From Octopus bimaculoides (lineage: Eukaryota): 44,317 nucleotides of DNA. Within the stretch, counting starts at the first letter, position 1. Every line of letters starts with the position of its first letter. The notes under the pieces were generated by a model. It did not search any database. It was not told the DNA's origin and was given only the letters and a program-made list of their open reading frames with translations. The translations under genes were made by a program, and so were the position numbers. Location of the stretch: positions 144,084,635-144,128,951 of the forward strand of contig NC_068982.1 in assembly GCF_001194135.2 (NCBI RefSeq), written 5' to 3'. Shown here one piece after another: positions 6,298 through 37,196 of this stretch.

Positions 6298-6412
6298 GCC
6301 CTGTGTAAATATAAAAGAAGCGCCTCCAGAACAAGACCAATGGTTCTGTCCAAAATGCTTATTAAAAACCAAACATAAACCAAAACGAAAACGGAAACGC
6401 AGAACATATTGA
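6298..6412 (+). CDS. TAF3: TAF3 last coding exon (PCVNIKEAPPEQDQWFCPKCLLKTKHKPKRKRKRRTY*)
   Basis: tttcag acceptor, phase matches (TG+G=Trp). It completes the C4HC3 PHD, then a basic tail as in TAF3. TGA at 6410-6412. Confidence 0.95.
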
Positions 6413-6526
6413 GACTTTGGTTGCCAGAGATTGGCCAACTCTGTAAAAAATGAAAATTAACTATCAACTTCAAATTTTATAATTCATTATTTAAGGACAG
6501 AGTGAAGTTGTTTATTTGATGTTGTA

Positions 6527-6532
6527 AATAAA
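6527..6532 (+). promoter_or_regulatory. Candidate TAF3 polyadenylation signal AATAAA
   Basis: First canonical hexamer, about 115 nt after the stop codon. Confidence 0.5.
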
Positions 6533-7017
6533 CCTTCGTGTTTACAACTAGTACTAGTTATCTTGTTTCCATCTATCAGATTCCTCTCACAAGGTATTGG
6601 TTAACCATAAGTTATCGTAGAAGACACTAATCCAATGTGCTATACAATAAAATTGAGACCATACTCACACAATTGCAAAGTGAACTTCTTAAACCATAGT
6701 CTGCACTTATAAATTTGGATAAGTTTGTATATTGTGGTAAGACATGCATTGATGTCTTGAAGAAAGCCTTTCTTAGTAGAAAAAGAAATTTAAATGTGTA
6801 AGCTTGCACTGAACAAATAGGTTTCATGAGTGTTCCAGAAATAAGGAAGAGTGAGAGAGGATGGTTACCAGGTAAAAAGTGTGTTACTAGATTGGCCACA
6901 GTTTCATGACAGGTGGGAGAAAAATGACGATATGACAATATCAAAGAGCAAAATAAAAATCCCAGACACTAAAAGATAACATATACATACATATATATAT
7001 ATTACACACACACATGT

Positions 7018-8950
7018 ATGTTTCAGGTGCTGAATAACATCTCTCCTTTCCATGTTCTCTCCCCACATTCCTTTCTCAGTTTTCAGAGTTGCCACTGTAA
7101 ATGTAGCTTTAACGAGATTGTAGAGATGCTTGAAAGGAGGCATGTTGATGTATGTTGCATCCAAGAGGTTAGGTGGAGAGGAGCTTCAGCCAGGTTCCTC
7201 ACAGGCAAGACACATAGGTATAAAATTTTCTGGGAAGGTAATTGTGACAGAGTAGGTGGTGTGGGCATACTCCTAGCTGAGAAATAGGTGGATAAAGTCA
7301 TAGAGATAGTTAGAGTATGTGATAGAGTACTTAAGCTCAGCATAGTATAGCTACAATTACATCTGTCTACGTCCCACAAGTGGGCCTACCAAATGAATAG
7401 AAGGACCACTTTTATGATAGTCTTCTACAGGCTACCTCCAAGACGAGCGACAATGATCTCATCTTTGTGGCTGGGGATTTCAATGGGCATGTCGGACAGC
7501 AGCCCGGTATCTTCCATGGTGTACATGGAGGCCATGGAATTGGTCCCCGAAACAAAGAGGGGACAAGGCTACTGGAGTTCTGTGATGCGAATAACCTTTT
7601 GATCTGCAACACCAACTTCAGAAAGCCACGATGCCAAGACGCAGACCAATCTGGAAGCTTAAGGACGTGTCATATGGTCAGACATTTAGGGACATCCTAA
7701 CTGAGAAATTTGATGAGAGGGAGGAGCAGCTACTTGTGACGTAGAAGGCAACTGGGGAATTCCTGCAGGATAGCTTGCTGAGTGCCATAAACCAAATCTG
7801 TGGCTTGTGCAAAGTCCCTTCCAGACCCAGGGTAATGTGGTGGTGGAACAATACCGTAGACAGGGCCATTAGAGCAAAGAAACAGGCCTGGAAGAGTGGG
7901 GGCAGCAGGGAATTGTACCAGATAGCCAGAAGGGAAGCTAGGAGACTGTATTGTAAATATCTAGCCAAGAGAGAAGCAGAAAAGAAAAAGTTTGCCTATG
8001 TTCAGTACCATGAGGACTAATGAACTGAAGTATTTTGGATTGCAAGACAGTGTGTGAGAGAAAATTGTGATGTCATAGGAGAGAAATATGTCTGCATGGA
8101 TGATGGTGCACTTGCTTTTAATGAGTCTGCAAAGAAAGACTGAACATGGAGAATGAATGGGAGGAGGAGAGTCTGCCAAATGTTGACCCAACTGAGGGAC
8201 CAGCTATCCGAACTGACAGTACCCTAGTAGATGAAGCAATTAAGGATATGAAGACAGGGAAAGCCCCTGGCTCATCAGGAATCAATGCTGAGATGCTTAA
8301 AATATCTGGCAGTGTGGATTATGGTCTAGTCACCTGTATTGTAAATCAGGTGGTTCATGAAGGAGTCATACCCAATGACTGGTGTAGCAGCACCATAGTC
8401 AACTGCTACAAAGGTAAAGGTGATGCCTTAGATAGAAATAATTACAGAGGTATCAAATTGTCAGATCAGGTGATGAAAGTTGTGGAAAGAGTCATAGCCC
8501 AATTTACCAGGGAAAGAGTTAGTCTAGATGAAATGCAGCTTGGCTTTGTGACTGGTAGAAGCACTACTGGTGCTATATTTCTGGTAAGGCAACTACAGGA
8601 GAAATACCCAGCCAAAGATAAACTGCTGTACTTGGCTTTTGCTGACTTGGAGAAAGCTTTTGACAGACTTCACTGATCCGTTATCTGGTGGTCAATACGG
8701 AAACTAAGGATACTGCCACAGACCAAAGTGGTTGGTGAGAGCTGTTCAAGCCTTGTACAGCGATACTACCAGTAAGGTGAGGGTAGGCAACGAGTACAGC
8801 GAAGAATTTGGGGTACAAGTAGGGGTTCACCAAGGATCAGTGCTCAGCCGCCTCTTGTTCATCATAGTCCTCCAGGAATAACAAAGAAATTCAACACTGC
8901 TCCTGGGAGCTCCTCTATGCTGATGACCTTCTTCTTATAACTAATTCAAT
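7018..8950 (+). mobile_element. Decayed RTE-clade LINE ORF (APE endonuclease plus reverse transcriptase), truncated at both ends
   Basis: Frameshifted pieces: VDVCCIQEVRWRG, GVGILL and AGDFNGHVG (APE); YKGKGDALDRNNYRGIKL, FADLEKAFD, GVHQGSVL and YADD at 8916-8927 (RT). Many stops. Confidence 0.9.
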
Positions 8951-9600
8951 ACCTGAGCATGAGAAAACTGAAAGTTGAATTCTTCCCATGAATATAGCAG
9001 CCTTTGTTGAGAACAAATGTTATGCTAAATCTTTAACCTTAAAACAATGTAGCACAAAAACTAATTTGCTAAAAGAAAACTGACTGCCTACATGTATCAC
9101 AAAGTGCTTGAATGAAAATATATTTTTTAAATCTTTGGAAAGGAGATATTGAGGAAATATGTCCTTTTTTAAGTCTAGCACAAGCATTTATAATTTTGGA
9201 AAAACACATGCAATTATGCCTTTCCCAAATACAAGTGGTTGTTCCGAGAGTGTAGCTGTGACAATAAGATTAGTGGCATATATGTAGAAAAGTTCCAATT
9301 TCTTGCACTCTGGTGCACTGACTTGACATTGTAGAATATTAGGAATAAGAACTTAAAGATTTTAAAAAAATATTACAACATATTTATTACTAATTTCAAA
9401 TGAATTCAGGCATTCGTTGCTTTTTGCTGTCTGAAAAATATAATAGAGAAAAAAAGACATTATTAAATGGTGTTACAAACAAATTAAATTTATGGCAATA
9501 TAAAAATGTAATGTTTTCTGTTATAGGAAACTTTTTTCTCATTGGTTACCATTGAGAAATAGTCACAGTATTTCTAAATGATAACATTTATATGAACTTA

Positions 9601-9975
9601 CTGGCTGGTGGCACATAAAATATACCATTTTGAGTGTGGCCGTTGCCAGTACCGCCTGACTGGCCTTCGTAGGATTTTCGAGCGAGATCGTTGCCAGTGC
9701 CCCTGGACTAGCTCTTGTGCAGGTGGCTCATAAAATACACCATTTTGAGCGTGGCCGTTGCCAGTACCGCCTGACTGGCCTTCGTGCGGGTGACACGTAA
9801 AAGTACCCACTACACTCTCTGAGTGGTTGGCATTAGGAAGGGCATCCAGCTGTAGAAACTCTGCCAAATCAGATAGGAGCCTGGTGTAGCCATCTGGTTT
9901 CACCAGTCCTCAGTCAAATCGTCCAACCCATGCTAGCATGGAAAGCAGACGTTAAACGACGATGATGATGATGAT
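9601..9975 (+). mobile_element. RTE LINE 3' UTR copy with (GAT)n tail
   Basis: Tandem ~50-nt subunits, then the conserved module ggttggcattaggaagggcatccagctgtagaaa...gacgttaaacgacgatgatgat. Confidence 0.85.
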
Positions 9976-10649
9976 ATACACCATACTGAATTTGGTAAAC
10001 ATACTTAAGTCTCAATGACCCAGTACTCATTTGCTTTAAATAAGAAATATGAAAAAGATCACAGTACAATTGTTGTGCTTCATTATCTTGCAAGGTCGAA
10101 CTGAAATCCTCTCAAAGGCAGGTGGCAGGAAATTAATGAGATCTTTGATAGAGGAAATTACTCTTGTATGTCCTGTAGTATTATTATTTCAATTACAGAA
10201 TATGAAGTCTCCAGTGTTGCTTCAGAGAGATTGTCTTACTGATTTAAAAGTACAATGAACAAGAAGGCTAAATAGATTAATATACAACAACTCAAATTCA
10301 CTGCTAGAATTATATTGTTTCTGGGAACAGCTTTTTCGACATTCTGTCGATAGGCTTGGCTACCGAGATATGGTTACCAAATCCAGATATGTTTCCTGCA
10401 ATAAACTATTCATTAAGTACTGGCCCTTTATAGGACCTTAAGAAATATTGACAATGACCAAATGGGAGAAATACTCAGCTTTACTAATCTACAACAAAAT
10501 CAGATTTTTTAATCACATTTTGAGTTTATCTTTACTGTTGGATACATTCAAATATATACCGAAATTTGTTTTTTTGAAAAGTCACCTTATATCTATGTTT
10601 TTTTTTTGCATNNNNNNNNNNTCTTTTTTTTTTTTTTTGTAAGGAATGA

Positions 10650-11835: not shown

Positions 11836-11890
11836 CTGCAGATTAGAAAAGATGAAAAAACAAAAATAAGGTAAATACCTTCCCATTTTT

Positions 11891-12700
11891 CATCATCATT
11901 GCTTAACATCCGCTTTCCATGCTGCCTTGGGTTGGATGGTTTGTCTGAGAACTGGCAAGCCAGAAGGCTGCACCAGGCTCCAATCTAATCTGGTAAGGTT
12001 TCTACAGCTGGATGCCCTTCCTAATGCCAACCACTCCGAGAGTATTGTGGGTGTTTTTTCACGTGCCACTGGCATGGGAGCAAATAAGGTGGCATTGGCA
12101 TTGGCCACGCTTGAATGGTGCTTTTTACATGCCACGGCACATGTGCCAGTCAGGCAGCACTGGCATCGGCCATGACTATAACTTCACTTGACTCAACAAG
12201 TCATCTCAAGCACAGCATATTGCCCAACAATTGAAGGGTACTTTTAAATGGGCCGGTTATGCAACACTGGTATTGGCCATGGCTACGATCTCACTTGACT
12301 TGTCAGGTCTTCTCCATCACAACATATCTCCAATGGTCTTGGTCTCTTGTCATTGCCTCAGTGAGACCCAACGTATGAAGGTTGTGCTTCACTACTTCAT
12401 CCCATGTCTTCCTGGGTTTACCTTTTCCACACGTTCCTTCCACTGTTAAGGTGTGACACTTCTTCACACAGCTGTCCTCATCCATACACAACACATGACC
12501 ATACCAGTGCAGTCATCTCTCTTGTACACCACATTTGATGCTTTTATGTCAGGGTGCTTACACTCTGTGGTGTATGCACACTGACATTACACATCCATTG
12601 GAGCATACTAGCTTCATTTCTTTTAAACCTATGCATATCCTCAGCAGTTACAGCCCATGTTTCACTGCCGTGTAGCATGGCTGTTCACACACATGCATTA
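11891..12700 (-). mobile_element. 5'-truncated RTE LINE: ORF C-terminus, 3' UTR and (GAT)n tail
   Basis: Minus strand reads AMLHGSETWAV...HWYGHVLCMDEDSCVKK...GKGKPRKTWDEVVKHNL, then runs into the same 3' module as the dispersed copies. Confidence 0.9.
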
Positions 12701-15387: not shown

Positions 15388-15585
15388 NNNNNNNNNNNNN
15401 NNNNNNNNNNNNNNNNNNNNNNNNNNNNNNNNNNNNNNNNNNNNNNNNNNNNNNNNNNNNNNNNNNNNNNNNNNNNNNNNNNNNNNNNNNNNNNNNNNNN
15501 NNNNNNNNNNNNNNNNNNNNNNNNNNNNNNNNNNNNNNNNNNNNNNNNNNNNNNNNNNNNNNNNNNNNNNNNNNNNNNNNNNNNN
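15388..15585. other. Assembly gap; other gaps at 10612-10621, 17635-18209, 19303-19513, 23799-24685 and 36222-36276
   Basis: Runs of N. Confidence 1.
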
Positions 15586-16104: not shown

Positions 16105-16623
16105 GGCCTCACCGAGGCACTGGCAAGTGATTGAAACCTTTGGAGATATGTTGTGCTTGAGAAGAGCCGGCAAGCCAAGTGAGACCGTAACCATGGTCTA
16201 TGCCAGTGCAGCATAACCAGATCATTTAAGAGTACCCTTCAATCATTGGGCAATAAACTGCACTTGCGAAGACCTGTTGAGACAAGTGCAGTTGTGGCCA
16301 ATGACAGTACCGCCTGATTGGCACCTGTGCCGGTGGCACATAAAAAGCACCATTTGAACATGGTCGTTGCCAGTGCCGCCTGACTGGCTCCCATGCCAGT
16401 GCCATGTAAAAAGCACCATTCAAGCGTGGTCAATGCCAGTGCCATATAAAAAGCACCCACTTCACTCTCAGAGTGGTTGGCATTCTGAAGGGCATCCAGC
16501 TGTAGAAACTTTGCCAGATCGGATTGGAGCCTGGTACAGCCTTCCGGCTCGCCAACCCTCAGTCAAACCATCCAACCCATGCTAGCATGGAAAGCGGACG
16601 TTAAATGACAATAATGATGATGA
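16105..16623 (+). mobile_element. RTE 3' UTR copy, inverted relative to its neighbour
   Basis: Subunit array, then gagtggttggcattctgaagggcatccagctgtagaaa and a gatgatgat tail. Confidence 0.85.
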
Positions 16624-17634: not shown

Positions 17635-18209
17635 NNNNNNNNNNNNNNNNNNNNNNNNNNNNNNNNNNNNNNNNNNNNNNNNNNNNNNNNNNNNNNNNNN
17701 NNNNNNNNNNNNNNNNNNNNNNNNNNNNNNNNNNNNNNNNNNNNNNNNNNNNNNNNNNNNNNNNNNNNNNNNNNNNNNNNNNNNNNNNNNNNNNNNNNNN
17801 NNNNNNNNNNNNNNNNNNNNNNNNNNNNNNNNNNNNNNNNNNNNNNNNNNNNNNNNNNNNNNNNNNNNNNNNNNNNNNNNNNNNNNNNNNNNNNNNNNNN
17901 NNNNNNNNNNNNNNNNNNNNNNNNNNNNNNNNNNNNNNNNNNNNNNNNNNNNNNNNNNNNNNNNNNNNNNNNNNNNNNNNNNNNNNNNNNNNNNNNNNNN
18001 NNNNNNNNNNNNNNNNNNNNNNNNNNNNNNNNNNNNNNNNNNNNNNNNNNNNNNNNNNNNNNNNNNNNNNNNNNNNNNNNNNNNNNNNNNNNNNNNNNNN
18101 NNNNNNNNNNNNNNNNNNNNNNNNNNNNNNNNNNNNNNNNNNNNNNNNNNNNNNNNNNNNNNNNNNNNNNNNNNNNNNNNNNNNNNNNNNNNNNNNNNNN
18201 NNNNNNNNN

Positions 18210-19116: not shown

Positions 19117-19239
19117 ATCAGGGTAAAAAAAAGTCTTTCATTTCAGCTCATGATGCAGAAAAGTTTAAACTGCACCATCACCAGTTTAAACTTCTCTGCA
19201 TCATGATCTGAAATGTAAGATTTTTTTTTCTACCCTGAT
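19117..19239. repeat. Hairpin of about 123 nt (33-bp core stem 19140-19172 / 19182-19214, 9-nt loop)
   Basis: atttcagctcatgatgcagaaaagtttaaactg pairs with cagtttaaacttctctgcatcatgatctgaaat with 2 mismatches. Pairing extends imperfectly to atcagggt/accctgat. Confidence 0.85.
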
Positions 19240-19245
19240 GAAATC

Positions 19246-19813
19246 TTTCGAGCGGGATCGTTGCCGGTGCCCCTGGGCTGGCTCTTGTGCGGGTGACACA
19301 TGNNNNNNNNNNNNNNNNNNNNNNNNNNNNNNNNNNNNNNNNNNNNNNNNNNNNNNNNNNNNNNNNNNNNNNNNNNNNNNNNNNNNNNNNNNNNNNNNNN
19401 NNNNNNNNNNNNNNNNNNNNNNNNNNNNNNNNNNNNNNNNNNNNNNNNNNNNNNNNNNNNNNNNNNNNNNNNNNNNNNNNNNNNNNNNNNNNNNNNNNNN
19501 NNNNNNNNNNNNNTTTCGAGCGGGATCGTTGCCGGTGCCCCTGGGCTGGCTCTTGTGCGGGTGACACATGAGGTTTTCGAGCGAGATGAGCGTGGCCGTT
19601 GCCAGTACCGCTTGACTGGCCTTCGTGCGGGTGACACGTAAAAGCACCCACTACACTCTCTGAGTGGTTGGCGTTAGGAAGGGCATCCAGCTGTAGAAAC
19701 TCTGCCAAATCAGATTGGAGCCTGGTGTAGCCATCTGGTTTCACCAGTCCTCAGTCAAATCGTCCAACCCATGCTAGCATGGAAAGCGGACGTTAAATGA
19801 CGACGACGATGAC
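19246..19813 (+). mobile_element. RTE 3' UTR copy spanning a gap
   Basis: Subunits on both sides of gap 19303-19513, conserved module and gacgacgatgac tail. Confidence 0.85.
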
Positions 19814-20767
19814 AGAGGCTTGACTTATCCTGTGTTTATTTGCTTGCAACACTAATAATTCTTTTCTTTAATGAGTGATCCAAGTAAGAAGATTACATTT
19901 TTATCAATCGCCAGCTTTATGTTGAAATGACTAGTAATGGAGAGAGTGAGAAGCTACAGCAGTAAAAGCACAATGGTAAGATATGCAAGGAATTAAGCAA
20001 AGAGGAAGATGTGAGGAATAGATTTATCGTAGTCAAAGATTAGAGATTAGGTGTAATTAATGGGATTTGATTGCAATGAGTAGTGTCTTAGTTTTGTGTA
20101 ATAATGATTTCTTATATTTAACATAGGACTATAACATAGTGGAGGAATACAGATTACTGAATTCATCCCCCAATACATAACTGCTACTTTACCTTTGAGA
20201 GACGAGAGGTAAAAGACAACACCAACAGGATTTGAATTCAAACAATGGAAGCAGAATGAAAAACTGAAAGGCTTTTTACCTGACATTTTATTATTTCTGC
20301 TACTCTACTACCCTTAGATTTGTGGGAATATTTTTATCTGAAATTTACAAAAACTTTACTATTGAGTACTTTTGTTTTTGTATTTGGTTCCTGGTGTGAA
20401 CTCATATGTTGAAACCTATTTTATTGCATATCAAGAGGATTGTTATGCTAATGTTGCAAATGGTGACAAAAAAGACTTTGGCAAACCTAACTGATTGGCT
20501 AATTGGCCAAAAGATTAATTAAACAATTGATTAGTTAATTGGTTAACCAAAGTGCAAATAAAAATAAAAAAGTGAAACAGAGCTAGTGCAAGTATTTATT
20601 ATTGTCACAATAACCCTCCTGAGATACAACAAATCTACTATTGGGTAAATTTTTAGGACTCAGTTGTTTAAATGATTAAATTAAAGACAATCATCTTCAA
20701 CAAGAAAAGAAAAAAAAAAAAGAATGTCTTGTAATTATTTTGACAACAAGTTTCATGCTATACTCAC

Positions 20768-21069
20768 TCTTTACTGTACATTTTCTGCAAACGATACCAT
20801 CCAGTCTCTGATGACAAAAACTTCTGTATATCTAATTCTGAAATAATTAATTTGTTTTCTAATGCTTGCTTTCGCAGATTTTCAGTGGCTTTTATTAAAG
20901 CATCAGTAGGCTGGGTCTGCGTTTCAATTGAAGGAGATGAGTCTGCAAGAGGAGTTTCAACCTCACTAGCATATATCCGAGGGAACCAAAATGAACTCCT
21001 GAATTCCTGATAGAAGGAAGTGGAGCATATTTGAGATGGAACAAGACCCTTCGGAAACAGATTATCCAT
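20768..21069 (-). CDS. TIMMDC1: TIMMDC1 first coding exon (MDNLFPKG...ETGWYRLQKMYSK)
   Basis: ATG at 21069, just after an acceptor (ttgacag; exon starts 21071), which implies an upstream 5' UTR exon. gtgagt donor at 20767. ETGWYRL resembles TIMMDC1 ESGWDRL. Confidence 0.8.
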
Positions 21070-21908
21070 TCCTGTCAATAAATTAAATATATATTTATAT
21101 ATATAAATCTGTATGTATATACATGCAAGGTAGACTCACTCAAAGTAATACATCTACACCTCATTCTACTGTCACCACTGTACAAAAGACCCCTCCTTTT
21201 TATAGAACTGTTTAAGTTTCTTTATCTACTAACAAGGAAGATAGTCCAATATGAATGTCGAAAGATGTTGATTAATTTTTTAATATGACTTACCAAACAA
21301 TGGACTTGCTCAATGTGATATATTTATACTTCATCATATAATCATTATTACTGGAATAGAAGACACCTCATTTTTGTCAATTCATTTAAATTCCTTTATT
21401 TCTGAGAAAAATGGCCCAAGCTCCCATCATCTGGTGTATTTTCCTTGCAATTCAGTGTCTTATTACATAGTAGTTTGACTTTACAATATCACTATTATGT
21501 TCCAAATCGTAGTCAGGCATATCTAGAATACATTACGGAAAATGACTGGTACTTTATCTTATAGACCTCAGAAAGATGAAAGGCAATGTTAGTCTTGGCT
21601 GGATTTGAGCTCGAAATGTAAATATTGCAGACACTTAGACCGATGCTTTAATGAGTGTTTCATTCCATTGCCTTAAAACTGCAAAAACCTCAGATGTTGT
21701 TATTTTCAGTCATACACCCGTTACAATGTCATTGTCCAGCACCAGGTCAACTGAGATAACTTTCTGAATCCAGAATAATTTCCTGTAAATTCAATGAGGT
21801 AAATACATAAGGAGCCACTAAGTTTAATGTAAATTCATTCCCCGTGAGTAAAGTCATTGACATGCTGTTTATTTGCTGAGTAAATAATTCGCTAAACATA
21901 GAAAAATT

Positions 21909-22120
21909 GGTACTACTAAAGCAGCGCGGACCCGAACGCGCAGTCGCGCGTCCGCGCTAGCTAGTCGTGAGTGGTCGATCCTAACCCTAAACACGTATTC
22001 ATTTGCACACGCGGGTTAGGGTTAGGGATAGGGTTAGGGTAGGGTTAGGATCGACCACTCACGACTAGCTAGCGCGGACGCGCGACTGCGCGTTCGGGTC
22101 CGCGCTGCTTTAGTAGTACC
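21909..22120. mobile_element. 212-bp MITE with perfect 81-bp TIRs, 8-bp TSD (GAAAAATT) and GG termini; Merlin-like
   Basis: TIRs 21909-21989 and 22040-22120 are exact reverse complements. TSD at 21901-21908 and 22121-22128. TTAGGG-like repeats inside. Confidence 0.9.
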
Positions 22121-22840
22121 GAAAAATTTATTTTTAGAAGATGAAATTACAGGCGATGAGTTTCCCCGTTATGAATTTAGGGACACCCTCTAGAGTATGT
22201 TCTTTTTACGAGTCCCATGGAGGGTTAACACCATTGCTGTATGAAACGTTTCTTTTTTACTGTCATTGCTTGATACCTCGGTGGTGAGCATGGTATTCAC
22301 TTTCATGCAGAAACTCGTTCGTTTTCATACAATTGCCAACGTGAAGTGAACAAGCGACGGAGGTAGAGAAACATGTCGACTGCCAGTAAAAATGAGAGAG
22401 ACGAGGTATAATTTTATTTGATAGGGGTAATTAATTTTGTATATTTGAGGATACATTGTAATATTTAATAAAAGCAGTAACATCGAAAACATTTTGCAAC
22501 TAAGTTGAAGGTTACTTCAAGATCAAAACTAGACCTTTAAGGTATGAAGAATAAATTACAACAAACAGAATTAGACTTTTGTTACCAAATACATATAAAT
22601 CATAACACACGAACCTTTCTATAATTGAATAAATGCGTTTAACTGGAAGAGAAAGACCTGAATAAGTGACATTGAACTGTCACATAAATAAAGCGGTTGT
22701 GTTTTCTTTACAAGTTTCTTCCGCTCTTCAGTAATTGAGGAAGTTTTGGTACAAAGCTAGTTGTTGTTACAATTGTCTCGTGTTATTATCTCTTGTTGAT
22801 TTCATTGATGTAGCAACTGCTCATTCATTTTATTCGTTTC

Positions 22841-22914
22841 TTTCATAACGTATAATTGTTTCATAACGTATAATTTGTTTCATAACTTATAATTTGTTTC
22901 ATAACGTATAATTT
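22841..22914. repeat. Tandem repeat, about 4 copies of a 19-20 bp unit (tttcataacgtataatttg)
   Basis: Directly visible, with one substitution in copy 3. Confidence 0.9.
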
Positions 22915-23154
22915 CATCTAGCACAAAAAGAAAAAAACAAAAAAGAGGCTTCCGTGGATGGAATTTCAATTGTTAGGGTTTTTACAGGCAACTTGTATTT
23001 GTGTTCAAAGGAATTTGAAAAATAAATCAAAGCTCGTTAGTGAATTGAGACTGATACGCTACATTTATCCGTATGTTTTCCGACCGACATTAGTAAAATA
23101 TTACACTACATCATACGATTGTTAGACTTCAGAAAACATTTTACAAACTTACTC

Positions 23155-23269
23155 ATGGCTAAAACTGGTGATGTCTCAAATATCGATCCAAGCAATGACT
23201 TGGCAAATTGGATGTCCCAGTTACCGGCTTCTTGTCATGACTTACCGCTAAATAGTTTGGCGATCCCAG
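23155..23269 (+). CDS. PLCXD: PI-PLC X domain-containing protein (PLCXD2/3-like), exon 1 (MAKTGD...NWMSQLP...SLAIPG)
   Basis: NWMSQLP and LAIPG are typical PLCXD N-terminal motifs. gtaaat donor at 23270, phase 1. Confidence 0.85.
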
Positions 23270-23687
23270 GTAAATACATCTTAAACTTGTTACTCATTAT
23301 TTTCTAATATTGATTTCTTTTTTAGGTATCAGCGGAATTCCAGTTAAAGCACTTCATGTAACTTTTTGGCGGCGGGAGGTTTACTTATTTGAATCGACTC
23401 CGCCCTAAAACTTGAATGGTGTTTAAGAGTGGCGTATGGTGGTTGTTGTATTGAGTGTTCTGTCACACCCAATGCCACCAAATTTCAAGTAGGAGTATAA
23501 CAAAAGTTTCCTATTCAGATTTGTGACTTTAATTTATGAATTTGCCATTTTCGATATGTGTGCAGCGCACACCTAGCACACCCGGAATATACACCCCTGG
23601 TGTTTAATCTTATAGGCCCTGGAAGGATGAGAACATTCATGTAAGCTACATTTGAACTCAGACGTGGCTATTTACAGTGCAACACTT

Positions 23688-24809
23688 GGTGGACATTGGA
23701 ATTAGACACTGAGGGAAAATGGCTGTAACTTTTTTATTTTTTAATTTTGGCGATTTTCGTTTTCGATAATGTGTTCTACATGTCACGGTCATGCGATTNN
23801 NNNNNNNNNNNNNNNNNNNNNNNNNNNNNNNNNNNNNNNNNNNNNNNNNNNNNNNNNNNNNNNNNNNNNNNNNNNNNNNNNNNNNNNNNNNNNNNNNNNN
23901 NNNNNNNNNNNNNNNNNNNNNNNNNNNNNNNNNNNNNNNNNNNNNNNNNNNNNNNNNNNNNNNNNNNNNNNNNNNNNNNNNNNNNNNNNNNNNNNNNNNN
24001 NNNNNNNNNNNNNNNNNNNNNNNNNNNNNNNNNNNNNNNNNNNNNNNNNNNNNNNNNNNNNNNNNNNNNNNNNNNNNNNNNNNNNNNNNNNNNNNNNNNN
24101 NNNNNNNNNNNNNNNNNNNNNNNNNNNNNNNNNNNNNNNNNNNNNNNNNNNNNNNNNNNNNNNNNNNNNNNNNNNNNNNNNNNNNNNNNNNNNNNNNNNN
24201 NNNNNNNNNNNNNNNNNNNNNNNNNNNNNNNNNNNNNNNNNNNNNNNNNNNNNNNNNNNNNNNNNNNNNNNNNNNNNNNNNNNNNNNNNNNNNNNNNNNN
24301 NNNNNNNNNNNNNNNNNNNNNNNNNNNNNNNNNNNNNNNNNNNNNNNNNNNNNNNNNNNNNNNNNNNNNNNNNNNNNNNNNNNNNNNNNNNNNNNNNNNN
24401 NNNNNNNNNNNNNNNNNNNNNNNNNNNNNNNNNNNNNNNNNNNNNNNNNNNNNNNNNNNNNNNNNNNNNNNNNNNNNNNNNNNNNNNNNNNNNNNNNNNN
24501 NNNNNNNNNNNNNNNNNNNNNNNNNNNNNNNNNNNNNNNNNNNNNNNNNNNNNNNNNNNNNNNNNNNNNNNNNNNNNNNNNNNNNNNNNNNNNNNNNNNN
24601 NNNNNNNNNNNNNNNNNNNNNNNNNNNNNNNNNNNNNNNNNNNNNNNNNNNNNNNNNNNNNNNNNNNNNNNNNNNNNNNNNNNNNATTTTTTAGTGGGAA
24701 TCGCATGACCGTGACATACAGAACACATTACCGAAAACGAAAATCGCCAAAATTAAAAAATAAAAAAGTTACAGCCATTTTCCCTCAGTGTCTAATTCCA
24801 ATGTCCACC
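23688..24809. mobile_element. DNA transposon with TIRs of at least 110 bp, GG ends and a near-perfect 8-bp TSD; interior lost in a gap
   Basis: ggtggacattggaattagacactgagggaaaatggc... occurs inverted on both sides of gap 23799-24685. Flanks are caacactt (23680-23687) and caacattt (24810-24817). Confidence 0.8.
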
Positions 24810-25036
24810 CAACATTTATTCAACGCGCTATTGAATCTGCCATTCATCATCGACCCCTTACTTTTCTAATAATTAGATCTATTGGTCGTCTAATCAAGGC
24901 AATTTTCCCCCCAAAAGTAGAGATCTAGACTAAATGTGCTTTGCAGTGTGTAGTTTGCTGTCTCATTGAAGATGACGGGGATAAATATAGTGGTTCGCTA
25001 AGATGGGAGAGACTGAGAAGGTGGTAAGCTCTTATA

Positions 25037-25860
25037 CAGGGTGTAGACGGTATTCGTTCGCATAATGACTGTCTCAGAAAAGTAAAAAAGTGTTCTTATT
25101 TTCTGAGATATATTTGTCAAATTAGGGTCAGTTTGTCTTCATGACATGTTTTGTCGATCTCACTCGATGGCAGCTTCCAGACTACCTCGAAACTGGCCAC
25201 AAACCTTTGTCACTATCTCCTGTTTTAGGCCCCCGATGGCCCTGGTAATCCTGGTCCCCAGCTCATCCTTCCTGTTGCAGCTAGATTTGTTGGTCTCTCG
25301 GTTCATTGCATCCCATACAAAAAAGTCGAGGGGTTTGCAGTCAGGCGAGTTGGGAGGCCAAATGTCAGGTGATGAGTGATCGAACAAATTCTTCGACAGT
25401 CAGGTCTGGGTTTTCTGACTGTGGCAGGGCACAGTCTTTCCGCCACACGTACAGCCTCCCTGTAGCTACCTGGTCAATCCAGGGCTTCACCACCTCACTC
25501 AGATGGATGTAGCCATCGTTGTTCAGCTTGAGACTCACAAGGAAGAAATGGGGTGGCATGATGTCACCATCACTGCTGATGACATCAAAGACCATGATTG
25601 TCACTGGAAGTTTCGCCTGCATGTCTCTGGTGAGGCAGCAAGCCACCTGTTGTTCTGAGAGTTGATCTTCTGGTCTTGGCAGAAATTCTTCTTCTTGAAG
25701 AACAACAGCACATCTAGATCCAGCAGGTGTTTCAACTTGTTGATCAGCTTCTTGATGTGCTTAAGTCGCTTTTCCTGCATAGCCTTGGACAGAAATTGTC
25801 CTTTCCTCGTCTTGTATGAAACGTAGCAAATGTTCTCATGCACCACCAGCCTGATGAGCT
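25037..25860 (-). mobile_element. Decayed Tc1/mariner transposase (probably maT/DD37D type) with one TIR
   Basis: ta|cagggtgt terminus at 25037. Minus-strand pieces include INSQNNRWLA, IMVFDVISSDGDIMPPHFF and WPPNSPDCKPLDFFVW. Confidence 0.85.
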
Positions 25861-26521
25861 TTTAATATATACTGTTTCATACAAGATGAGGAAAGGACAA
25901 TTTCTGTCCAAGGCTGAAACTTTTGTGGGGCGGAGGCCAGTTGATTAAATTGACCCCAGTACACAACTGGTACTTAATTTATCGACCCCGAAAAGACGAA
26001 AGGCAGAGTCGACCTCAGCAGAATTTGAACTTAGAACGTAAAGACAGATGGTCATAATATGCAAACATTTCTCATGGCACCAGTACACTGTTTACAGATG
26101 CTTACATTTTTTATGTTTTCCGTGAATTTTTCATGGGTCCAGCTAGTGAGTAATTATTATACTGAGTGGACTTTTGCTGATCTGGCTCCCTCGCCAATGG
26201 CACTTGGTCTCCCATCTGTAATACAGCTGTATTAGACACAAGACAATTTTTGAATACATTTAAACATAAAAGTAAGCATGGCTTATACATAACCAAATAT
26301 GGTAGGTCTTGTACTAAAGACTAATTCTCGCCACCTTGCATCGCTCGGTCTTAACAAATTCGTGACCCGACTTAGAACACACATTCCTTTCCATAGTTCA
26401 GTGCCAGCTTTCATTTTAGTTTAATGACCGACCGTTCTTTCTAATTTTACCTCTTCCCTACAGAAATATCTTCCTTTTATTGTCTATTTTGTTTCCCACA
26501 AAATGACTGGTGAGGAGCTAT

Positions 26522-27747
26522 CTGTGGTATACACTTGAGTGAAATTCCTCACTCCCCTTTATTATATATACATGCACTCGAATGTAGCAGGTAACAGTTT
26601 GCCTTTGGCCAGTGTTTGGACCCCATTGTGTCCACTACTCTGATTGGTTGGTATTGGCGCAATTTGTCTCTTACTCTGTCACACCAATTTGCAACATGTA
26701 ACCAATCAATCAGAGCCTCTAAATAAATTCATGTGGGGGTCACTAATTTGTAAGGACTGTGTTATGTGAGATAATGAGAATGGGTCTCAGGTACATCACA
26801 CAGCCCTTACAGTAAATATAAAAAGAATACATATATGTGCCAGAGGGAAAAAGGGACACCCGAGTAGAATGTTTTATTAACATGTGTCTGTCTGTGTGTC
26901 ATGTATACAGAATAATAGACAGGTCATCATGAAAACAAAGTGTATGTGTGTATAGACATGGATGTATGCGTGTGCGTTAAGTACATATAAGAATAACTAT
27001 GAAGAAGACTAAAAGAGTCTATATTGAGAAGTTAGACAAATGTTCGTAGACACAAGAATGAGAAATACCAGTTCATAGTCAACTGTACATGGTAATTGAA
27101 AAACTGTATCAAGAAGTTGTGGCCATGATGCTGAGCCAGTTGCAGTACATGTTGTACAAGAAGTTGTGGCTGTGATACTGCTGCCTGGGTCACTTGGTAC
27201 ATGAGTCCTCGTAGGTTGTATATTCACTGTTGATCTATGGTGAAGTAATTCACAAACAATGAAGTGTTGGAACCTGGGCAAGCTGCTTGTTGAGTTGTGT
27301 ACATAGAAATGGTGTTGACAACGTTAAGATGATAGTGGAGATGAAGAAAGAGATCACTGTAATGCTGTTGGTTGAAGTTGGTAAGTCATTGTGTGGCAGC
27401 TGTGGTGTCATTGCTGGAACTGGATGTGTCTTGTGTGGTCAGTGGCTAGACCTTAAAAGGTCTGAAACCTAAGACAAGGAGAAGCTGGGTTTTTATAAGA
27501 AGCTGTAGGCTCAAACTGGGTTGAGAACAGGCTGTCTCATGTGATTTTATTTAGAGGCTCTGATTGGTTATATGCTGCAAATTGGCATGATAGAGTAAGA
27601 GACAACTTGTGCCAATACCAACCAATCAGAGTAGTGGACACAATGGGGTCCAAATAGCAGCCAAAGGCTAGCTGTTACCTGCTACGTTCGAGCACACGTA
27701 TATATAATAAAGGGGAGAGAGGAATTTCATTTGAGTGCACGCTACAG
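26522..27747. repeat. Long inverted-repeat element: arms of about 205 bp (26522-26730 and 27540-27747), about 800-bp interior
   Basis: Arms are reverse complements with scattered transitions; shared core ggaccccattgtgtccactactctgattggttggtattggc. No TSD found. Confidence 0.8.
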
Positions 27748-28122
27748 TCTTAAAGCATTCCCCCTCTTTAATAAATTATATCCTATATTATGTACTAATG
27801 CACAGATACATTCTTTATCTTGTACTGTGTACATTAACAATGTTAAACCTGTTTGTTTTTTTTTACTCTAAAACGATTACAATATCAAGTAACTGCACTT
27901 CCAAAAGTGAACTCTCTCCCTACTGCATTATATTTTTAATCAATTTATTCCAGCTTTTGTCTCTCCTGCTTTTTTAGATAAAAATCAATCATTGAGAAAG
28001 CTTTTTTCTTCACAATGGATGTAATTCTAATTAGAATTTCTTGGCTCATTACCTTAAATTTTGTTAATGTAATCTGCTGAGCCTTCTACTGGGCCTGGAG
28101 AGACTAAGACGAGCCTAATCTA

Positions 28123-28359
28123 CAGGGTGTTCAAAAAGTCTCTCCGCAGTCAATTTTTTTTCATCTTGTGCATTACCATGGTGCTACTTCAAGAGTTTTT
28201 CAGTGAACAGATTATTTTGAAGGGACTTTGGCCACAAAGATCACCTGATTTAACACTGCAAGACTTTTTTTTTTCTGAGGAGCAAGTAAAGGATCAGTGT
28301 ACAAGAATCGCCCGAAAACCATTAAATACTTACTGTGGTGAGACATTCTGAACACCCGG
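28123..28359 (+). mobile_element. 237-bp internally deleted Tc1/mariner derivative (MITE)
   Basis: TA flanks at 28121-28122 and 28360-28361. 28-bp TIRs match at 23/28. Internal remnant LWPQRSPDLTLQDFF. Confidence 0.8.
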
Positions 28360-28492
28360 TAGCATATTCTTTGTTGAAAATTCTGTAGTTGTTCCATGTA
28401 CAGGATTAGAATGTGTCTTGTATCATGCAATAGTAAATCTACAAAATGTTCCCAAGAATAACACTGATGATGTTTGTGTTTATCTTTTGCAG

Positions 28493-29328
28493 GTTCTCAT
28501 GACTCATTTAGTTCTAAGTTAAAAGAAGGAGAAATTGCTCCTGATTGCACTGAACTAATTAGATTAGCTGAGAAATTGTTTGGAAAAGCTGCAGATAAAG
28601 TAATTATGAGATGGTCTACTACACAGAATCTGGACTTAGGTGAGCAACTTGAAAAAGGGATCCGCTATTTTGATCTGAGGGTAGCTTACAATGATTCTTG
28701 CAATGATTTTCAGTTTGTTCATGGCATATATGGACCAAAAATAGATTGCTGTATGCAAGAGATCAATTCATTCTTGGAGAAACATCAGAAAGAGCTGGTA
28801 ATTCTGGATTTTAACCATTTTTATAATGTAAATCCAGAAAATCACAAAAGGCTGCTTTCAATGTTGTCTGATATATTTGGAAAGAAAATGTGTCCATTTA
28901 TTGGAGCTGCTAACTTGACACTTAATGTTGCCTGGGAGGTCAATCTTCAGGTAGTTATCTGCTATCATCATAATCTTGCTACTCAACAACCAATATTCTG
29001 GCCTGGAAATGCTGTACAACACCTCTGGGCAAACACTGATCAACTTCCAAAACTGATCAGTGCATTTGAGGAGGAATACCATAAAGGACGTCCAAGTGAT
29101 TGTTTTTTCAACTGGCAAGGTACTCTAACACCAACAGTAACTACTGTTCTTCAACATCTTGACGGTAGCTTGAAAACTACATTGGCTGAGAAAGCAACAT
29201 CTGCCATTACAAAGTGGGTTGCAGACAAATCTCCGTGTTGCAAGGGCTTAAACATCATATCTGTAGATTTTATGCAATTGTATGACTTTGTACATGTAAT
29301 TGTAGAAATGAATCATGACATTCAATAA
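28493..29328 (+). CDS. PLCXD: PLCXD2/3-like exon 2 (GSHDSFS...IRYFDLRV...FVHG...ELVILDFNHFY...NIISVDF...Q*); 316 aa in total
   Basis: ttgcag acceptor, G+GT=Gly. Both catalytic His motifs (SHD, FVHG) are present. TAA ends at 29328 and AATAAA is at 29360-29365. Confidence 0.92.
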
Positions 29329-32127: not shown

Positions 32128-32268
32128 TCAAAAGTTAATCAATTGTTTAACACCTTCAAAACATCTCCATTTGTCAGGTAAGTAGAAAGGTTCGTGAGTA
32201 TGTGAAAATGGGGTGTCATAGCCACAGACACGTTTTACAGGAGCTTCTAAGTGGAGGAAGCATTCGGA
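32128..32268 (-). CDS. BCKDHB: BCKDHB last exon ([46 protein letters not shown])
   Basis: ttgcag acceptor, 141 nt. E1-beta C-terminal motif. Confidence 0.95.
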
Positions 32269-32351
32269 CTGCAATGATACAATGTGGATAAGAAGAAAAA
32301 TATGTTAGATTCCTAAGTTTACAGAATAAATATATATAAAAAAGCGAAATC

Positions 32352-32701
32352 GGGATGGCACCTGTACCCAGCGTCGCCTTTCTGGCACTTGTGCCCGTGA
32401 CATGTGTAAGGATTTTCGAGCGAGATCGTTGCCAGTGCCCCTGGACTGACTCTTGTGCAGGTGGCACATAAAATACACCATTTTGAGCATGGCCGTTGCC
32501 AGTACCGCCTGACTGACCTTCATGCGGGTGACACGTAAAAGCACCCACTACACTCTCTGAGTGGTTGGCGTTAGGAAGGGCATCCAGCTGTAGAAACTCT
32601 GCCAAATCAGATTGGAGCCTGGTGTAACCATCTGGTTTCACCAGTCCTCAGTCAAATCGTCCAACCCTTGCTAGCATGGAAAGCGGACGATGATGATGAT
32701 A
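32352..32701 (+). mobile_element. RTE 3' UTR copy
   Basis: Subunits, conserved module and (GAT)n tail. Confidence 0.85.
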
Positions 32702-33471
32702 TATATATATATATATATATAGATAAATAGCAAGTGTGAAAATTTATCTGTGTATTAAGATTATTCATTAAAACGATTTCCATGTGAATTTCATTATTAC
32801 GCATGGCTCTTTACATTCTGAGCTCAAATACTGATGAGGTTGGCTTTGCCTTTCATCCTTTCAGAGTTGATAAAATAACCTCCTTCCCCTACAATTGCTG
32901 GCCTTGTAACAAAATTTCAAACAATTATCATTATTGTTATTATTATTACTATATTCTTTTATTTGTTTCAGTCATTTGATTGTAGTCATACTGGAGCACC
33001 ATCTTTAGTTGAACAAATCGACCCCAGGACTTGTTCTTTGTAAGCCTAATACTTATTCTATCAGTCTCTTTTGCCAAACCACTAAGTTATGGGGATGTAA
33101 ACATTCCAACATCAGTTATGCAATGGTGGGGGGGGGGGAGACAGACACACACACATACATACGATGGGCTTCTTTCAGTTTATCCACTCATAAGACTTTG
33201 GTCGACCTGAGTATAGTAGAAGACACTTGCCCAAGGTGCCATGCAGCAAGACTGAATCTGGAACCATGTGGTTGGTAAGCAAGCTATTTACCACACAGCC
33301 ACTCCTACACCTATGTCATCATTATAAATATATATCTTTTCAAATTTTTCCCATTTTTAATTTATTAGTGTTCGATATTTCTCGATAAGATAAACTTAAG
33401 TATTCACAATTTTGACATAGAATAAAACTATAAAACTTATTGTTGACAGCTTCAAAAAAATATTTCCATAC

Positions 33472-33558
33472 CTGAATAGTAGATGCAATTTCAGCACCAA
33501 ATCCTCCTGTAATAGGGGCTTCATGGGCAACCAATGCCCGACCAGTCTTTCGTACTGA
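33472..33558 (-). CDS. BCKDHB: BCKDHB exon ([29 protein letters not shown])
   Basis: ttttag acceptor and gtatgg donor, 87 nt. Confidence 0.95.
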
Positions 33559-34424
33559 CTAAAAAAGAAGAAAAAAATTGAGTATGATTTAAACATTTTA
33601 TTGGTGATACCTTTAATACTAATGTAGCCTCTTAGTTTACTTGTGCTCTGCATCTCAAGCAAGACAGTTAATTTCACATACACAGTGCTACATCTTCAAA
33701 TCATTTCTCTTTAGATTCAATAGATCTTTTGCATTTAATAATCATAACTCACTGACTCATGCTGTCAACTTTTTGCAAAGAGAAATAAACTCATTTGATG
33801 ACAACAACATCAACAATTTACTACCTAAGTATCTATGTTTTCACTGCAACCACCAGCACTACTAATTACTAGTAACAGAAACTATCAACTATTTAATGCA
33901 GAAATTATCAACTTCATCTGAGAAGCAGTTAATGCACCTCATTTCAACAGAACATTTACTGCTGCTATTCATGTTTGTCTAGTTATATCTGAACTCTGTA
34001 TGTCAGGCTGCGTCTGTTGTCTACCCAATGTGTTTATTGAGTGCACAGTATCAAGTTCCTACTTAATATCTTTCTACGTATCTGGCAAAGTAATGTGGTT
34101 GCTTGGTTTGCTAGAAACAGCAGCCAAACCCCCCACCACCACCACCACCAAAACCACACCCTGCTGTTTTGAAAAATGGACAACACAGTCATAAATATAC
34201 AAAAGTAAAGACAGTCGTGACCAGAATGCCATTGATCAAAGGCCTGTTTGAATCAAGGCTAACCTGGAGTTGAACAACATAATTATCTTGCTTACCTTAA
34301 CTACATCAATTACACTATCTTTATAGTTCAGTGCTCCCTCTTTTGCTCTTAGTATCTACTCAAAATAACAAACTTATGTTCCTTAAATCAACTTCTCTGT
34401 AATCAATTCACTGTAAAGAAGCCA

Positions 34425-34886
34425 GATGAAGAGACTAAGTGATTTGATGATGCCAGTGGCATGTAAAAAGCACCTGTGAAGCGTTGGGCCTCACAGAGGC
34501 AATGTAGCCAATGCCAGTGTCACATAACAGGTACCCGTGCTTCTGGCACATAAAAAGCACCTTCCGAGTGTTGGGCCTCATGGAGACAATGACAAATGAC
34601 CGAGATCTTTGGCAATATGCTGTGCTTGAGAAGAAGACTCATCAAGCCAAGCAAAATCATAGTCATGCCAGATACTGAAGTCACACAACTGGCACCTGTG
34701 CTGATGGCACATAAAAGCACCCACTACACTCTTGGAGTGGTTGATGTTAGGAAGGACACCCAGCTGTAGAAACCTTGCCAAATCAGACTGGAGTCTGGCA
34801 CAGCCCATCAGCCTACCAGCCCTGATCAAACCACCCAACCCATGCCAGTATGGGCAATGGACATTAAAATATGATGATGATGATGA
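34425..34886 (+). mobile_element. Diverged RTE 3'-end copy
   Basis: ORF-end-like sequence, subunits, module and (GAT)n tail. Confidence 0.75.
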
Positions 34887-35607
34887 ATTCCTGGGTGGAA
34901 GGGTTGATTTGTCACCCAGTTTAACATGGCCTCCTAACCCCTGTATTCTGGTCTGCTGTTCAATCTGAGGATATTTGGTGTTATTTCCTACACAAGCCAC
35001 AATAAAGAGATTGAGTTGGATTCATATTTCGGTTCTAAACCTTATAGCCTTTTTTACACGAGGCATTTATAAGGTTGTTGAAAGATGGAATGAGGTAATT
35101 TAAAGCATTGGAGAGTATGTTAATGAATAAATATTCCCATAGTCATTGGCTTATTCATTTTTACCTTAGATCTTTAAATTGGACATTACTTTTGCACCAA
35201 CCTGATATTTTTAATAGGTACTAATACAACTTTTGTCAGTATCACCTCTTTAACATCAACACTTATATTTATCACCACTGAAGGACTGTGAGCCAATGTA
35301 CAAAGCTTTATGCAATTATTTGACTTACATAGAAAAGTAGATAAAAATCTTTCCAATCATATATTACCATTTTAAAAAATAAAAAAATATCCATTGAATA
35401 ATGTAGTCCTGAATACACTATACCTTCAAATAAGATTGGATGGTCACAGCTTGAAAACCTTTTGATTAAAGTATGTTTGATCAGGGATAACCATTGGATT
35501 AAACAACATACAATCACTAATTTACACAACCTCGGACCATCATCATTAATACTAGCAATATTTAAAAGAATTTGAAATATATCAAAAGAATTTCCATGGA
35601 AACTTAC

Positions 35608-35753
35608 ATTGATAACTGTTTCGGTGTCCCAGGGTAAAATCGTTCGCAGATCTATCACATCACAGCCAACATTCAAACGGTCTTCTGCCATAGTAGCAAC
35701 TTCTCGTAGGACATGTACCTGAGTTCCCCAACCAATAAGTGTTACATCAGAAC
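35608..35753 (-). CDS. BCKDHB: BCKDHB exon ([19 protein letters not shown]...[17 protein letters not shown])
   Basis: cttag acceptor and gtaagt donor, 146 nt, phase 1 to phase 0. Confidence 0.95.
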
Positions 35754-36276
35754 CTAAGAAAGTAATAACAATTAGACAATACAAAGACACCAGATGTATG
35801 TGTGTATGCGTTTGTTGATATGTCTCTCTGTATTCAGTAACATAAATCTTTCACCAATTGTTTTGAAAAACTTTAAGATAGTTGAACAAAATAATACTAA
35901 AAAACAAATGTAATTTTCTCACAATGATAAGAAAGATATAGGGAGAATTAATAAAATGAATATAATTAAAACAGCCACCAATTTAGATGATAGAAGAATG
36001 ACTGTTATTCTTCCGCAAAATTCCATGGTTTGTTAGATCAGTTTTTATTTTTGGTTTGTAAAGTGGTTGGAGGCCTCCGTCCATAGAAACCATGCCAAAG
36101 CTGATCTGGAGCTCAACACAGCCTTGCAGCTCACCATGTCCTATCAAATCATCCAATCCATGCCAGCATGGAAAACAGACATTAAATGATGATGTTGATG
36201 ATATAGATATATATATATATANNNNNNNNNNNNNNNNNNNNNNNNNNNNNNNNNNNNNNNNNNNNNNNNNNNNNNN

Positions 36277-36307
<31 letters not shown>

Positions 36308-36349
36308 TATATATACATGGATACACATACACACACACATATATAAAGG

Positions 36350-36700
36350 GTCAGGGGTAAAGATCCCCTTCAGTCATGAATGATCATGGGATTGCACCTA
36401 GAAAGTTACCCTCCAAGGCACAAATTTGGGCAAGGCTGTTTATGGAAGACCAGCAGTTGCCCATGCACACCAGCCTCCCCTCTCCACACCATTGATGTTA
36501 TCCAAGGGAAAGGCAAAGGCCAATACAGCTTGGTACCAGTGACATCCCAACTCATTTTTACAGTTGAGTGAACTGGAGCAAGGTAAAAATAAAGTGTTTT
36601 GCTCAAGAACACAACACGTCCCAGTCCAGGAACTGAACTCACTATCTCATGATTGTGAGTCCAATGTTCTACCCACTGAGCCATGTACCTTCACTATGCT
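36350..36700 (-). mobile_element. tRNA-derived SINE
   Basis: Minus strand has an A box (tggctcagtgggtag), a B-box-like gagttcagttcc and a central gtgttcttgagcaaaacact. Confidence 0.65.
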
Positions 36701-37024
36701 GATACATATATGTGTGTACATGCATGTGTTTGAATATTTACATTCTTGCATGGAAGTGTTGAACACAAAACAATGAAATTATGTTGATATTCTGTTAATA
36801 AATTGTTCTCCACCTTTGTGCTTTTGAGAACAAGTGGAATTTTTAAAAATCCCTCACTTGAAAAACACATCAGAATTAGAAACAGGAAAGGCATCTAACT
36901 GTAAAACAATGTCTCAATACATGTCTAATCCATGCTAACATGGAAAAATGAACATAAAATGAACAAATGACTGAGATCAAGGAAATAATGGAGCAGGTAG
37001 ATTTAAATAAAATTTGAGATTTAC

Positions 37025-37196
37025 CTTCCACAATTACTTCAGCTTTAGACAATGGTATTTCAAAGGAACCGACAGGAACCTCTTCTACCGATGACCGATA
37101 AAGAATTTTAGGTTCAAAAAATATACAAGGGTTTCTGTCTTTGATACAGCTTAAAAGAAGACCTTTTGCTTGAATTGGGCCACGTGGGATAACAAC
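37025..37196 (-). CDS. BCKDHB: BCKDHB exon ([41 protein letters not shown]...AEVIVEG)
   Basis: tttcag acceptor and gtaaat donor, 172 nt. Confidence 0.95.

Follow-up and report, generated by a model that had tools for sequence, protein, structure and literature searches.

The window analysed here, a 44,317-nucleotide stretch of Octopus bimaculoides DNA, carries a short hairpin-shaped insertion in the 2.1-kb region separating two divergently transcribed genes, one of the Tim17 family (TIMMDC1-like) and the other PLCXD3 (Table 1). The PLCXD3 product is 100% identical to O. bimaculoides XP_014778656.1 and 93% identical to PLCXD3 of O. vulgaris and O. sinensis, and the gene order Tim17-family (-), PLCXD3 (+), BCKDHB (-) is the same in O. 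vulgaris (locus L001) and O. sinensis (locus L002). The Tim17 gene call of O. vulgaris ends at the position matching ours (L001 7914); the first coding ORF of this gene in the window had no Pfam match, and a protein search with the same TIMMDC1 exon-1 ORF gave no matches. Locus L008 (GCA_001194135.2, chromosome CM046602.1), from which the PLCXD3 range was taken, equals the window in 26174/26174 bases, the element included. The initial annotation had put the insertion about 840 bp from the TIMMDC1 ATG and about 1030 bp from the PLCXD ATG, and the measured distances, 840 and 1035 bp, bear this out.

Table 1. Features of the insertion and of the genes on either side of it, in window coordinates.
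Feature	Position	Strand	Remarks
Tim17-family (TIMMDC1-like) gene, first coding ORF	20764..21069	-	ATG at 21069, 840 bp from the element
Left target-site duplication, GAAAAATT	21901..21908	.	8 bp; single copy in O. vulgaris and O. sinensis
Element proper	21909..22120		212 bp; foldback, hairpin-shaped, non-coding
Left terminal inverted repeat (TIR)	21909..21989	+	81 nt; begins GGTACTACTAAAGC; 12 CpGs
Telomere-type C-strand motif, CCTAACCCTAA	21980..21990	+	Inner end of the left arm
Spacer between the perfect arms	21990..22039	+	50 nt; about 24 nt unique (ACACGTATTCATTTGCACACGCGG), then telomere-type G-strand units
Telomere-type array, GGGTTA x 6.3	22013..22049	+	TRF, period 6, 87% matches, two variant units; covers spacer and inner end of the right arm
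Right terminal inverted repeat	22040..22120	-	81 nt; ends GTAGTACC; exact reverse complement of the left arm
Right target-site duplication, GAAAAATT	22121..22128	.	8 bp
PLCXD3 gene	23155..29328	+	Two coding exons, 316 aa; ATG at 23155, 1035 bp from the element; PF00388

The range first reported for the insertion, 21901-22128, is made up of the element and both copies of its target-site duplication. A repeat finder and a script both confirmed what had been described at the outset, namely TIRs that are identical at 81/81 positions, an exact 8-bp duplication and ends reading GGTAC...GTACC. From the local base composition we estimate the chance of an 8/8 match of the duplication at these positions at about 5e-5. 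The inverted repeats account for 76% of the element, which as single-stranded DNA folds into one 81-bp stem (-120 kcal/mol, z = -25), and the left arm has an internal imperfect palindrome of its own (21923-21934 / 21947-21958). No ORF with both its start and its stop inside the element was found. Short, non-coding, and bounded by TIRs and a duplication, the 212-bp element has the make-up of a miniature inverted-repeat transposable element (MITE).

Neither the window nor about 115 kb of other octopus loci yielded a second copy of this MITE. A TIR 24-mer and an inner 26-mer had no second occurrence in the 44-kb window (0/100 shuffles matched), and the unique part of the spacer, ACACGTATTCATTTGCACACGCGG, had no BLASTN match in any fetched octopus locus. 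Two metagenome scans with the terminal 24-mer and the 26-base conserved core of the TIR returned 0 matches, and a full-text search did not find the TIR string in any of the papers it covered. An Rfam match of the element to Leu_leader was sub-threshold (26 bits vs 50) and was discarded as a chance match caused by the hairpin.

The state of the site before insertion was read from a BLASTN comparison of window positions 20500-23400 with L001 and L002. Both flanks align in both relatives, at 82-92% identity, with the element skipped, and the orthologous sites are empty and hold a single GAAAAATT (in O. vulgaris at L001 8844-8868 onward). The left flank together with GAAAAATT is 25/25 identical in both species and runs straight into the right flank, with no footprint. 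Since both species have an empty site with one GAAAAATT, this is a true insertion of the O. bimaculoides lineage, which arrived with its 8-bp duplication after the split from O. vulgaris and O. sinensis. Fixation across species, which the initial annotation had named as the observation that would speak against a recent origin, was not seen.

With the flanks joined and aligned, substitution divergence from the empty sites is 6.3-7.6%, or about 3-4% per lineage. Had the element inserted right after the split, about 6 differences would be expected among the 81 arm pairs and 8 duplication pairs; the observed count is 0/89. Under a simple clock, and at the 95% bound, the lack of differences against about 7% divergence in the flanks dates the insertion to the younger half of the branch leading to O. 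bimaculoides, which is most likely its age, although the identity of the arms could reflect conversion or hairpin-templated repair instead of youth. The initial description of the insertion as very recent is therefore upheld as far as the younger half of the branch, while "very recent" itself is more than these 89 pairs demonstrate. To find further O. bimaculoides assemblies covering the site, five small ORFs on either side of the insertion were looked up, and none was on record.

The element also differs from its surroundings in base composition. With 12 CpGs per arm and 3 in the spacer it holds 27, at 59% G+C and a CpG observed/expected ratio (o/e) of 1.48; for the whole window o/e is 0.34-0.37, and the 2 kb on either side have 31% G+C and o/e 0.67. 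By the formal definition (at least 200 bp, G+C at least 50%, o/e at least 0.6) the element is a CpG island, and the counts agree with the 12 CpGs per arm in CpG-poor surroundings first reported. The absence of CpG decay had also been put forward as an argument for recency, and here the density holds but its value as evidence of age is weak, because a decayed Merlin copy of O. sinensis (in L007, see below) still has o/e 1.33, which makes CpG retention a poor clock in this case. Several differences between this copy and the MITE are CpG-to-TpG/CpA changes, and in the comparison of the MITE with each of its ends 4-5/6 differences at CpG positions are C>T or G>A, a bias expected from the decay of an older copy.

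Merlin elements are defined by TIRs of 24-462 bp, terminal 5'-GG and duplications of 8-9 bp (PMC8101967), and the octopus element has an 81-nt TIR, a GG start (GGNRM in the original definition) and an 8-bp duplication. As these properties by themselves are indecisive, a link to a transposase was sought. A set of 191 Merlin proteins has been reported for O. bimaculoides, with sequences in the supplement (PMC8101967), and KOF79200.1 from that supplement was used as a query to find octopus Merlin proteins, whose loci were fetched. When the MITE was compared with all fetched loci by BLASTN, a single match was significant, 510 bp upstream of ORF P0146 (LOC115231130) in L007 (O. sinensis VCDQ01004827.1). 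P0146 carries the domain PF12762 DDE_Tnp_IS1595 (53 bits vs a cutoff of 27) and is cut short by a nested MITE.

The unit in question, L007 5415-7751, is 2.3 kb long and bounded by inverted repeats, with three collinear inverted blocks and outermost ends that start GGT(A/G)CTA. An arm of our MITE matches its left end (5415-5492) at 60/78 positions (77%), in register from base 1, and its right end at 50/71 (70%). The alignment score of 40, against 3.4 +/- 1.9 in 2000 shuffles, was the best at any position on both strands of the octopus loci fetched by then. The blocks common to the MITE arms and the L007 ends are GGTACTA, GCGCGCA-TCGCG, GCTAGCTAGTCGTGA and GTCGATCCTA. The duplication of the L007 element itself is not preserved (TTAACAAG vs GGCTTTGG). 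This homology to the ends of a PF12762-bearing element ties the TIRs to a Merlin transposase, through a single decayed copy in a sister species. The Merlin assignment of the initial annotation, which had named a link to a non-Merlin transposase as its refutation, is thereby borne out.

The closest O. bimaculoides transposase to P0146 is P0134 in locus L006, which is 82% identical and has a coding part homologous to L007. The left end of the P0134 copy is missing, and the terminal sequence at its right end is another one, GGATCTTT..., so that this copy does not identify the partner of this MITE in O. bimaculoides; L006 was ruled out as a second example of the TIR on the same ground. P0140, another Merlin protein of O. 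bimaculoides with 89% identity to P0146, was looked up and is not on record. The ENA contig with P0145 (L009) had no TIR similarity.

Other octopus Merlins and MITEs were used to check the duplication length, and wherever the duplication was legible it was of the 8-bp kind, together with GG ends, as the initial assignment had predicted. In a second Merlin family (protein P0207; L003-L005) the elements are 8.7 kb long with TIRs of about 350 bp that start GGCGATG/GGCATAG, the copies are 99.4-99.8% identical, and the duplications are exact over 8 bp (GCAAATCT in L003, CAAGGCTT in L005). The MITE nested in the transposase ORF of L007 (6780-7247, 468 bp) has the TIR of the P0207 family (44/44), with a 7/8 duplication (CAAAAGAG/CAGAAGAG). 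A 710-bp foldback element of O. bimaculoides, L006 5575-6284, has ends GGATC..GATCC and an exact 8/8 duplication, TAACGTTG, and over its terminal ~100 nt it matches the right end of the adjoining Merlin copy, P0134. Merlin-derived MITEs are common in these octopus genomes, and the element in the window is one more. The repeats of O. vulgaris include 18 Merlin families (2.2 Mb) and 74 MITE families, and two of the Merlin families, as well as MITE families, have been recently active (PMC13282606), which agrees with recent Merlin activity in the genus; the supplement of that study comes without repeat consensus sequences.

We conclude, with a probability of roughly 0.8, that 21909-22120 is a non-autonomous foldback MITE derived from the cut-and-paste DNA transposons that form the Merlin (IS1595-like DDE) superfamily. 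A Merlin transposase supplied in trans would have bound the ends of the element, excised it and integrated it through a staggered 8-bp cut at GAAAAATT, and repair of that cut would have left the 8-bp duplication.

The superfamily could be a different one, since an 8-bp duplication alone cannot separate Merlin from hAT, P, Zisupton or Novosib, and just one Merlin-bearing relative of the TIR was found. The element would then have been moved by the transposase of such a superfamily and its resemblance to Merlin would be coincidental. The termini of hAT elements are YARNG and those of P elements CATG, whereas ours are GG...CC; the duplication has a length that would suit hAT, but GGTAC termini do not have the CA/TA-RNG form. 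Coincidence also sits badly with 77% identity over 78 nt, in base-1 register, to the end of a PF12762-bearing element and with the GG and 8-bp rule kept by the other octopus Merlins, which leaves this reading unlikely. Inverted repeats that fill 76% of the element around a short spacer would also suit a palindromic transposon of non-Merlin lineage, either Foldback-type (FB/MuDR-related) or Galileo-type. However, FB/MuDR duplications are 9-10 bp long and this one is 8 bp, the arms lack tandem subrepeats, their only tandem units being the telomere-type hexamers at the inner ends, and the TIRs are homologous to a Merlin end, all of which make a Foldback or Galileo origin highly improbable.

The insertion might instead be old, its arms kept identical by intramolecular conversion or hairpin-templated repair and the empty sites of the outgroups produced by precise loss. 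A perfect palindrome can homogenise, CpG content keeps time poorly, given the o/e of the L007 copy, and the outgroups are two closely related genomes only. Cut-and-paste elements rarely excise so precisely that one target copy is restored, though, and the duplications, which lie outside any hairpin, are as identical as the arms, while the 25/25 identity over left flank and target in both outgroups shows no footprint; we consider an old insertion very unlikely. The telomere-type repeats in the core, and a window that comes from a draft assembly with N gaps, raise the question of a non-transposon origin, as a palindromic chimera of the assembly or as a product of double-strand-break repair with telomerase-added repeats and a fold-back copy, and in vertebrates telomeric repeats are documented as insertions at break sites (PMC8537989). 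Neither would be expected to come with an exact 8-bp duplication and GG..CC ends, nor with arms homologous to a transposon end in the assembly of another species and a clean empty site. On these grounds an assembly artefact and a simple break-repair insertion were rejected, with scarcely any probability left to them.

The centre of the element holds telomere-type hexamers, in the inner ends of the arms and in the spacer, which the initial annotation did not mention. After GTCGATCCTA the L007 Merlin end goes on with unrelated sequence, whereas the MITE goes on with ACCCTAA. In 160 kb of octopus DNA there are three telomere-like arrays, all at the centres of inverted-repeat structures: in the window element, in L006 5575-6284 and in L007 3149-3601. 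Two of the three structures, the window element and L006 5575-6284, have exact 8-bp duplications and GG..CC ends. In the 710-bp MITE of L006, a C-strand array comes after a G-strand one. The L006 and L007 arrays have a degenerate pattern in common (83% over 70 nt), and members of that family therefore inherit the array instead of gaining it afresh with every copy.

Molluscs are known to have MITEs with tandem repeats inside them (PMC3879986), and the core hexamers may most simply be read as a subterminal or central tandem-repeat module like those of other mollusc MITEs. In an alternative origin, telomerase would heal a fragile palindrome centre or a broken transposon end, and the healed end would fold back and prime a copy of the other arm; healing followed by fold-back copying would also explain the perfect 81/81 arms. 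If this were true, such elements would spread short interstitial telomeric sequences around the genome. A distinct octopus class of Merlin-linked foldback MITEs with telomere-type centres is a doubtful but conceivable proposal, resting on three cases. If the association of telomere repeats with foldback centres holds genome-wide, it would point to one way in which interstitial telomeric repeats come into being and spread. Apart from its central telomere-type repeats the element is an ordinary transposon relic.

Filled in O. bimaculoides and empty in O. vulgaris and O. sinensis, the site offers a clean, datable case of Merlin-type transposition among the cephalopods, whose genomes are unusually rich in Merlin transposase genes. 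The element also places a 212-bp CpG-dense perfect palindrome within the shared 2.1-kb putative promoter region of TIMMDC1 and PLCXD3, and so provides a natural test of whether such insertions change the expression or methylation of the two genes.

Among known systems, the long inverted arms and hairpin-forming architecture recall Drosophila Foldback (FB) and Galileo. FB and Galileo, whose arms consist of tandem subrepeats, make duplications of 9 bp and 7-8 bp and are members of the MuDR and P superfamilies, respectively; the octopus element has neither such subrepeat arms nor these duplication lengths, and lacks the MuDR or P membership. It is closer to the Merlin/IS1016/IS1595-related elements, with which it shares the 8-bp duplication, the 5'-GG, the TIR length (PMC8101967) and TIR homology to a DDE_Tnp_IS1595 element, and from which it differs in having no transposase, in arms that are perfectly identical over 76% of its length and in its telomere-type core. 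Within Merlin, the nearest comparison is O. sinensis L007 5415-7751, whose terminal ~78 nt are homologous and include the blocks GCGCGCA-TCGCG, TAGCTAG and GTCGATCCT. Unlike our MITE, the L007 unit is a coding element of 2.3 kb with imperfect TIRs, in which no telomere-type repeats follow GATCCTA, the duplication is lost and the ORF is broken by the nested MITE.

In its modular plan the element resembles DTC84 of Donax trunculus (PMC3879986), a mollusc MITE that likewise combines arms with a central tandem-repeat or microsatellite module; in contrast to DTC84, the octopus element has the telomeric hexamer as its repeat, in short runs of about 2 and 6 units, and its superfamily link is to Merlin. 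Finally, the short internal (TTAGGG)n stretch with variant units is like the interstitial telomeric sequences introduced at double-strand breaks (PMC8537989), but those insertions have neither TIRs nor an 8-bp duplication, whereas the octopus repeats are a component of a mobile element.

The 8.7-kb Merlin element, found at three loci carrying the Merlin protein P0207 (L003-L005), encodes an intact 305-aa DDE_Tnp_IS1595 ORF and has TIRs of ~350 bp, together with a second, internal inverted-repeat pair. Since identity among its three copies, which come from O. sinensis and O. vulgaris, is 99.4-99.8%, the sequences suggest that this element was recently active. To the same P0207 family belongs a 468-bp MITE in O. 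sinensis (locus L007), with TIRs matching at 44/44 positions (GGCGATGTTTCGCTTGTCG...), a core formed by (CATA)n and the flanking duplication CAAAAGAG/CAGAAGAG. This MITE is nested in the transposase ORF P0146, which it truncates.

Two further inverted-repeat structures have telomere-like centres. The 710-bp foldback element of O. bimaculoides (locus L006) ends in GGATC..GATCC, is flanked by an exact 8-bp duplication, TAACGTTG, and has arms of ~71% identity around a telomere-like core made of first a G-strand and then a C-strand array. The outermost ~100 nt of this element correspond to the right end (~L006 4505-4602) of the adjoining Merlin copy, which carries the transposase P0134. A third inverted-repeat structure, located in L007, has arms that are 71-80% complementary and surrounds a degenerate telomere-like array, which shares 83% identity with the L006 core.

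Features located in the window and at related loci
Feature	Location	Strand
8.7-kb Merlin element	L003 272-8980; L005 ~252-8991; L004 to ~8950	
468-bp MITE	L007 (VCDQ01004827.1) 6780-7247	
Third inverted-repeat structure	L007 3149-3601	
Degenerate telomere-like array	L007 3398-3487	
710-bp foldback element	L006 (LGKD02092233.1) 5575-6284	
563-codon open frame	window 1403-3091	+
Non-LTR retrotransposon remnant	window 7100-8900	+
~300-bp interspersed repeat	window 9601-9909, 11870-12172, 16242-16562, 19178-19744, 32219-32647, 34581-35021, 41913-42239	both
19-bp tandem repeat	window 22837-22914	
Putative mariner/Tc1-like ORFs	window 25160-25650	-
BCKDHB exons (Transket_pyr + Transketolase_C)	window 33343-40975	-
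N runs (assembly gaps)	window 10612-10621, 15388-15585, 17635-18209, 19303-19513, 23799-24685, 36222-36276	
Region listed with the N runs for the Tim17-family gene call	L008 (matching O. bimaculoides locus) 1-2207	

Close to the insertion site of the MITE in the window, 22 bp to its left, lies a length difference of ~66 bp (TGCTTTATACGCAC...TTATTATA), present in O. vulgaris and O. sinensis and absent from O. bimaculoides (window 21886/21887 versus 8779-8843 of the O. vulgaris locus). On the other side, a tandem repeat with the unit TTTGTTTCATAACGTATAA (4.2 copies, 91% matches) precedes the PLCXD3 ATG by ~240 bp.

Other repeats are spread through the window. The ~300-bp interspersed repeat, in about seven copies, translates as ...KPDGYTRLQSDLAEFLQLDALPNANHSESVVG..., has no Pfam match and is probably an octopus SINE-like family. 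The non-LTR remnant is split across frames, with RVT_1 just above the cutoff and an Exo_endo_phos_2 endonuclease fragment below it. The frame-broken ORFs judged mariner/Tc1-like by eye only (...PPNSPDCKPLDFFVWD...) gave no Pfam match.

The six N runs total 1936 N, and it is probably because of these gaps that the Tim17-family gene call is only 109 aa in O. bimaculoides, compared with 276-279 aa for the O. vulgaris and O. sinensis calls. The Lys/Pro/Thr-rich 563-codon frame (PAAKKKAVVKKPAVKK...) has no match in Pfam and may represent one large coding exon belonging to some gene. The position of BCKDHB is syntenic with that in both O. vulgaris and O. sinensis.
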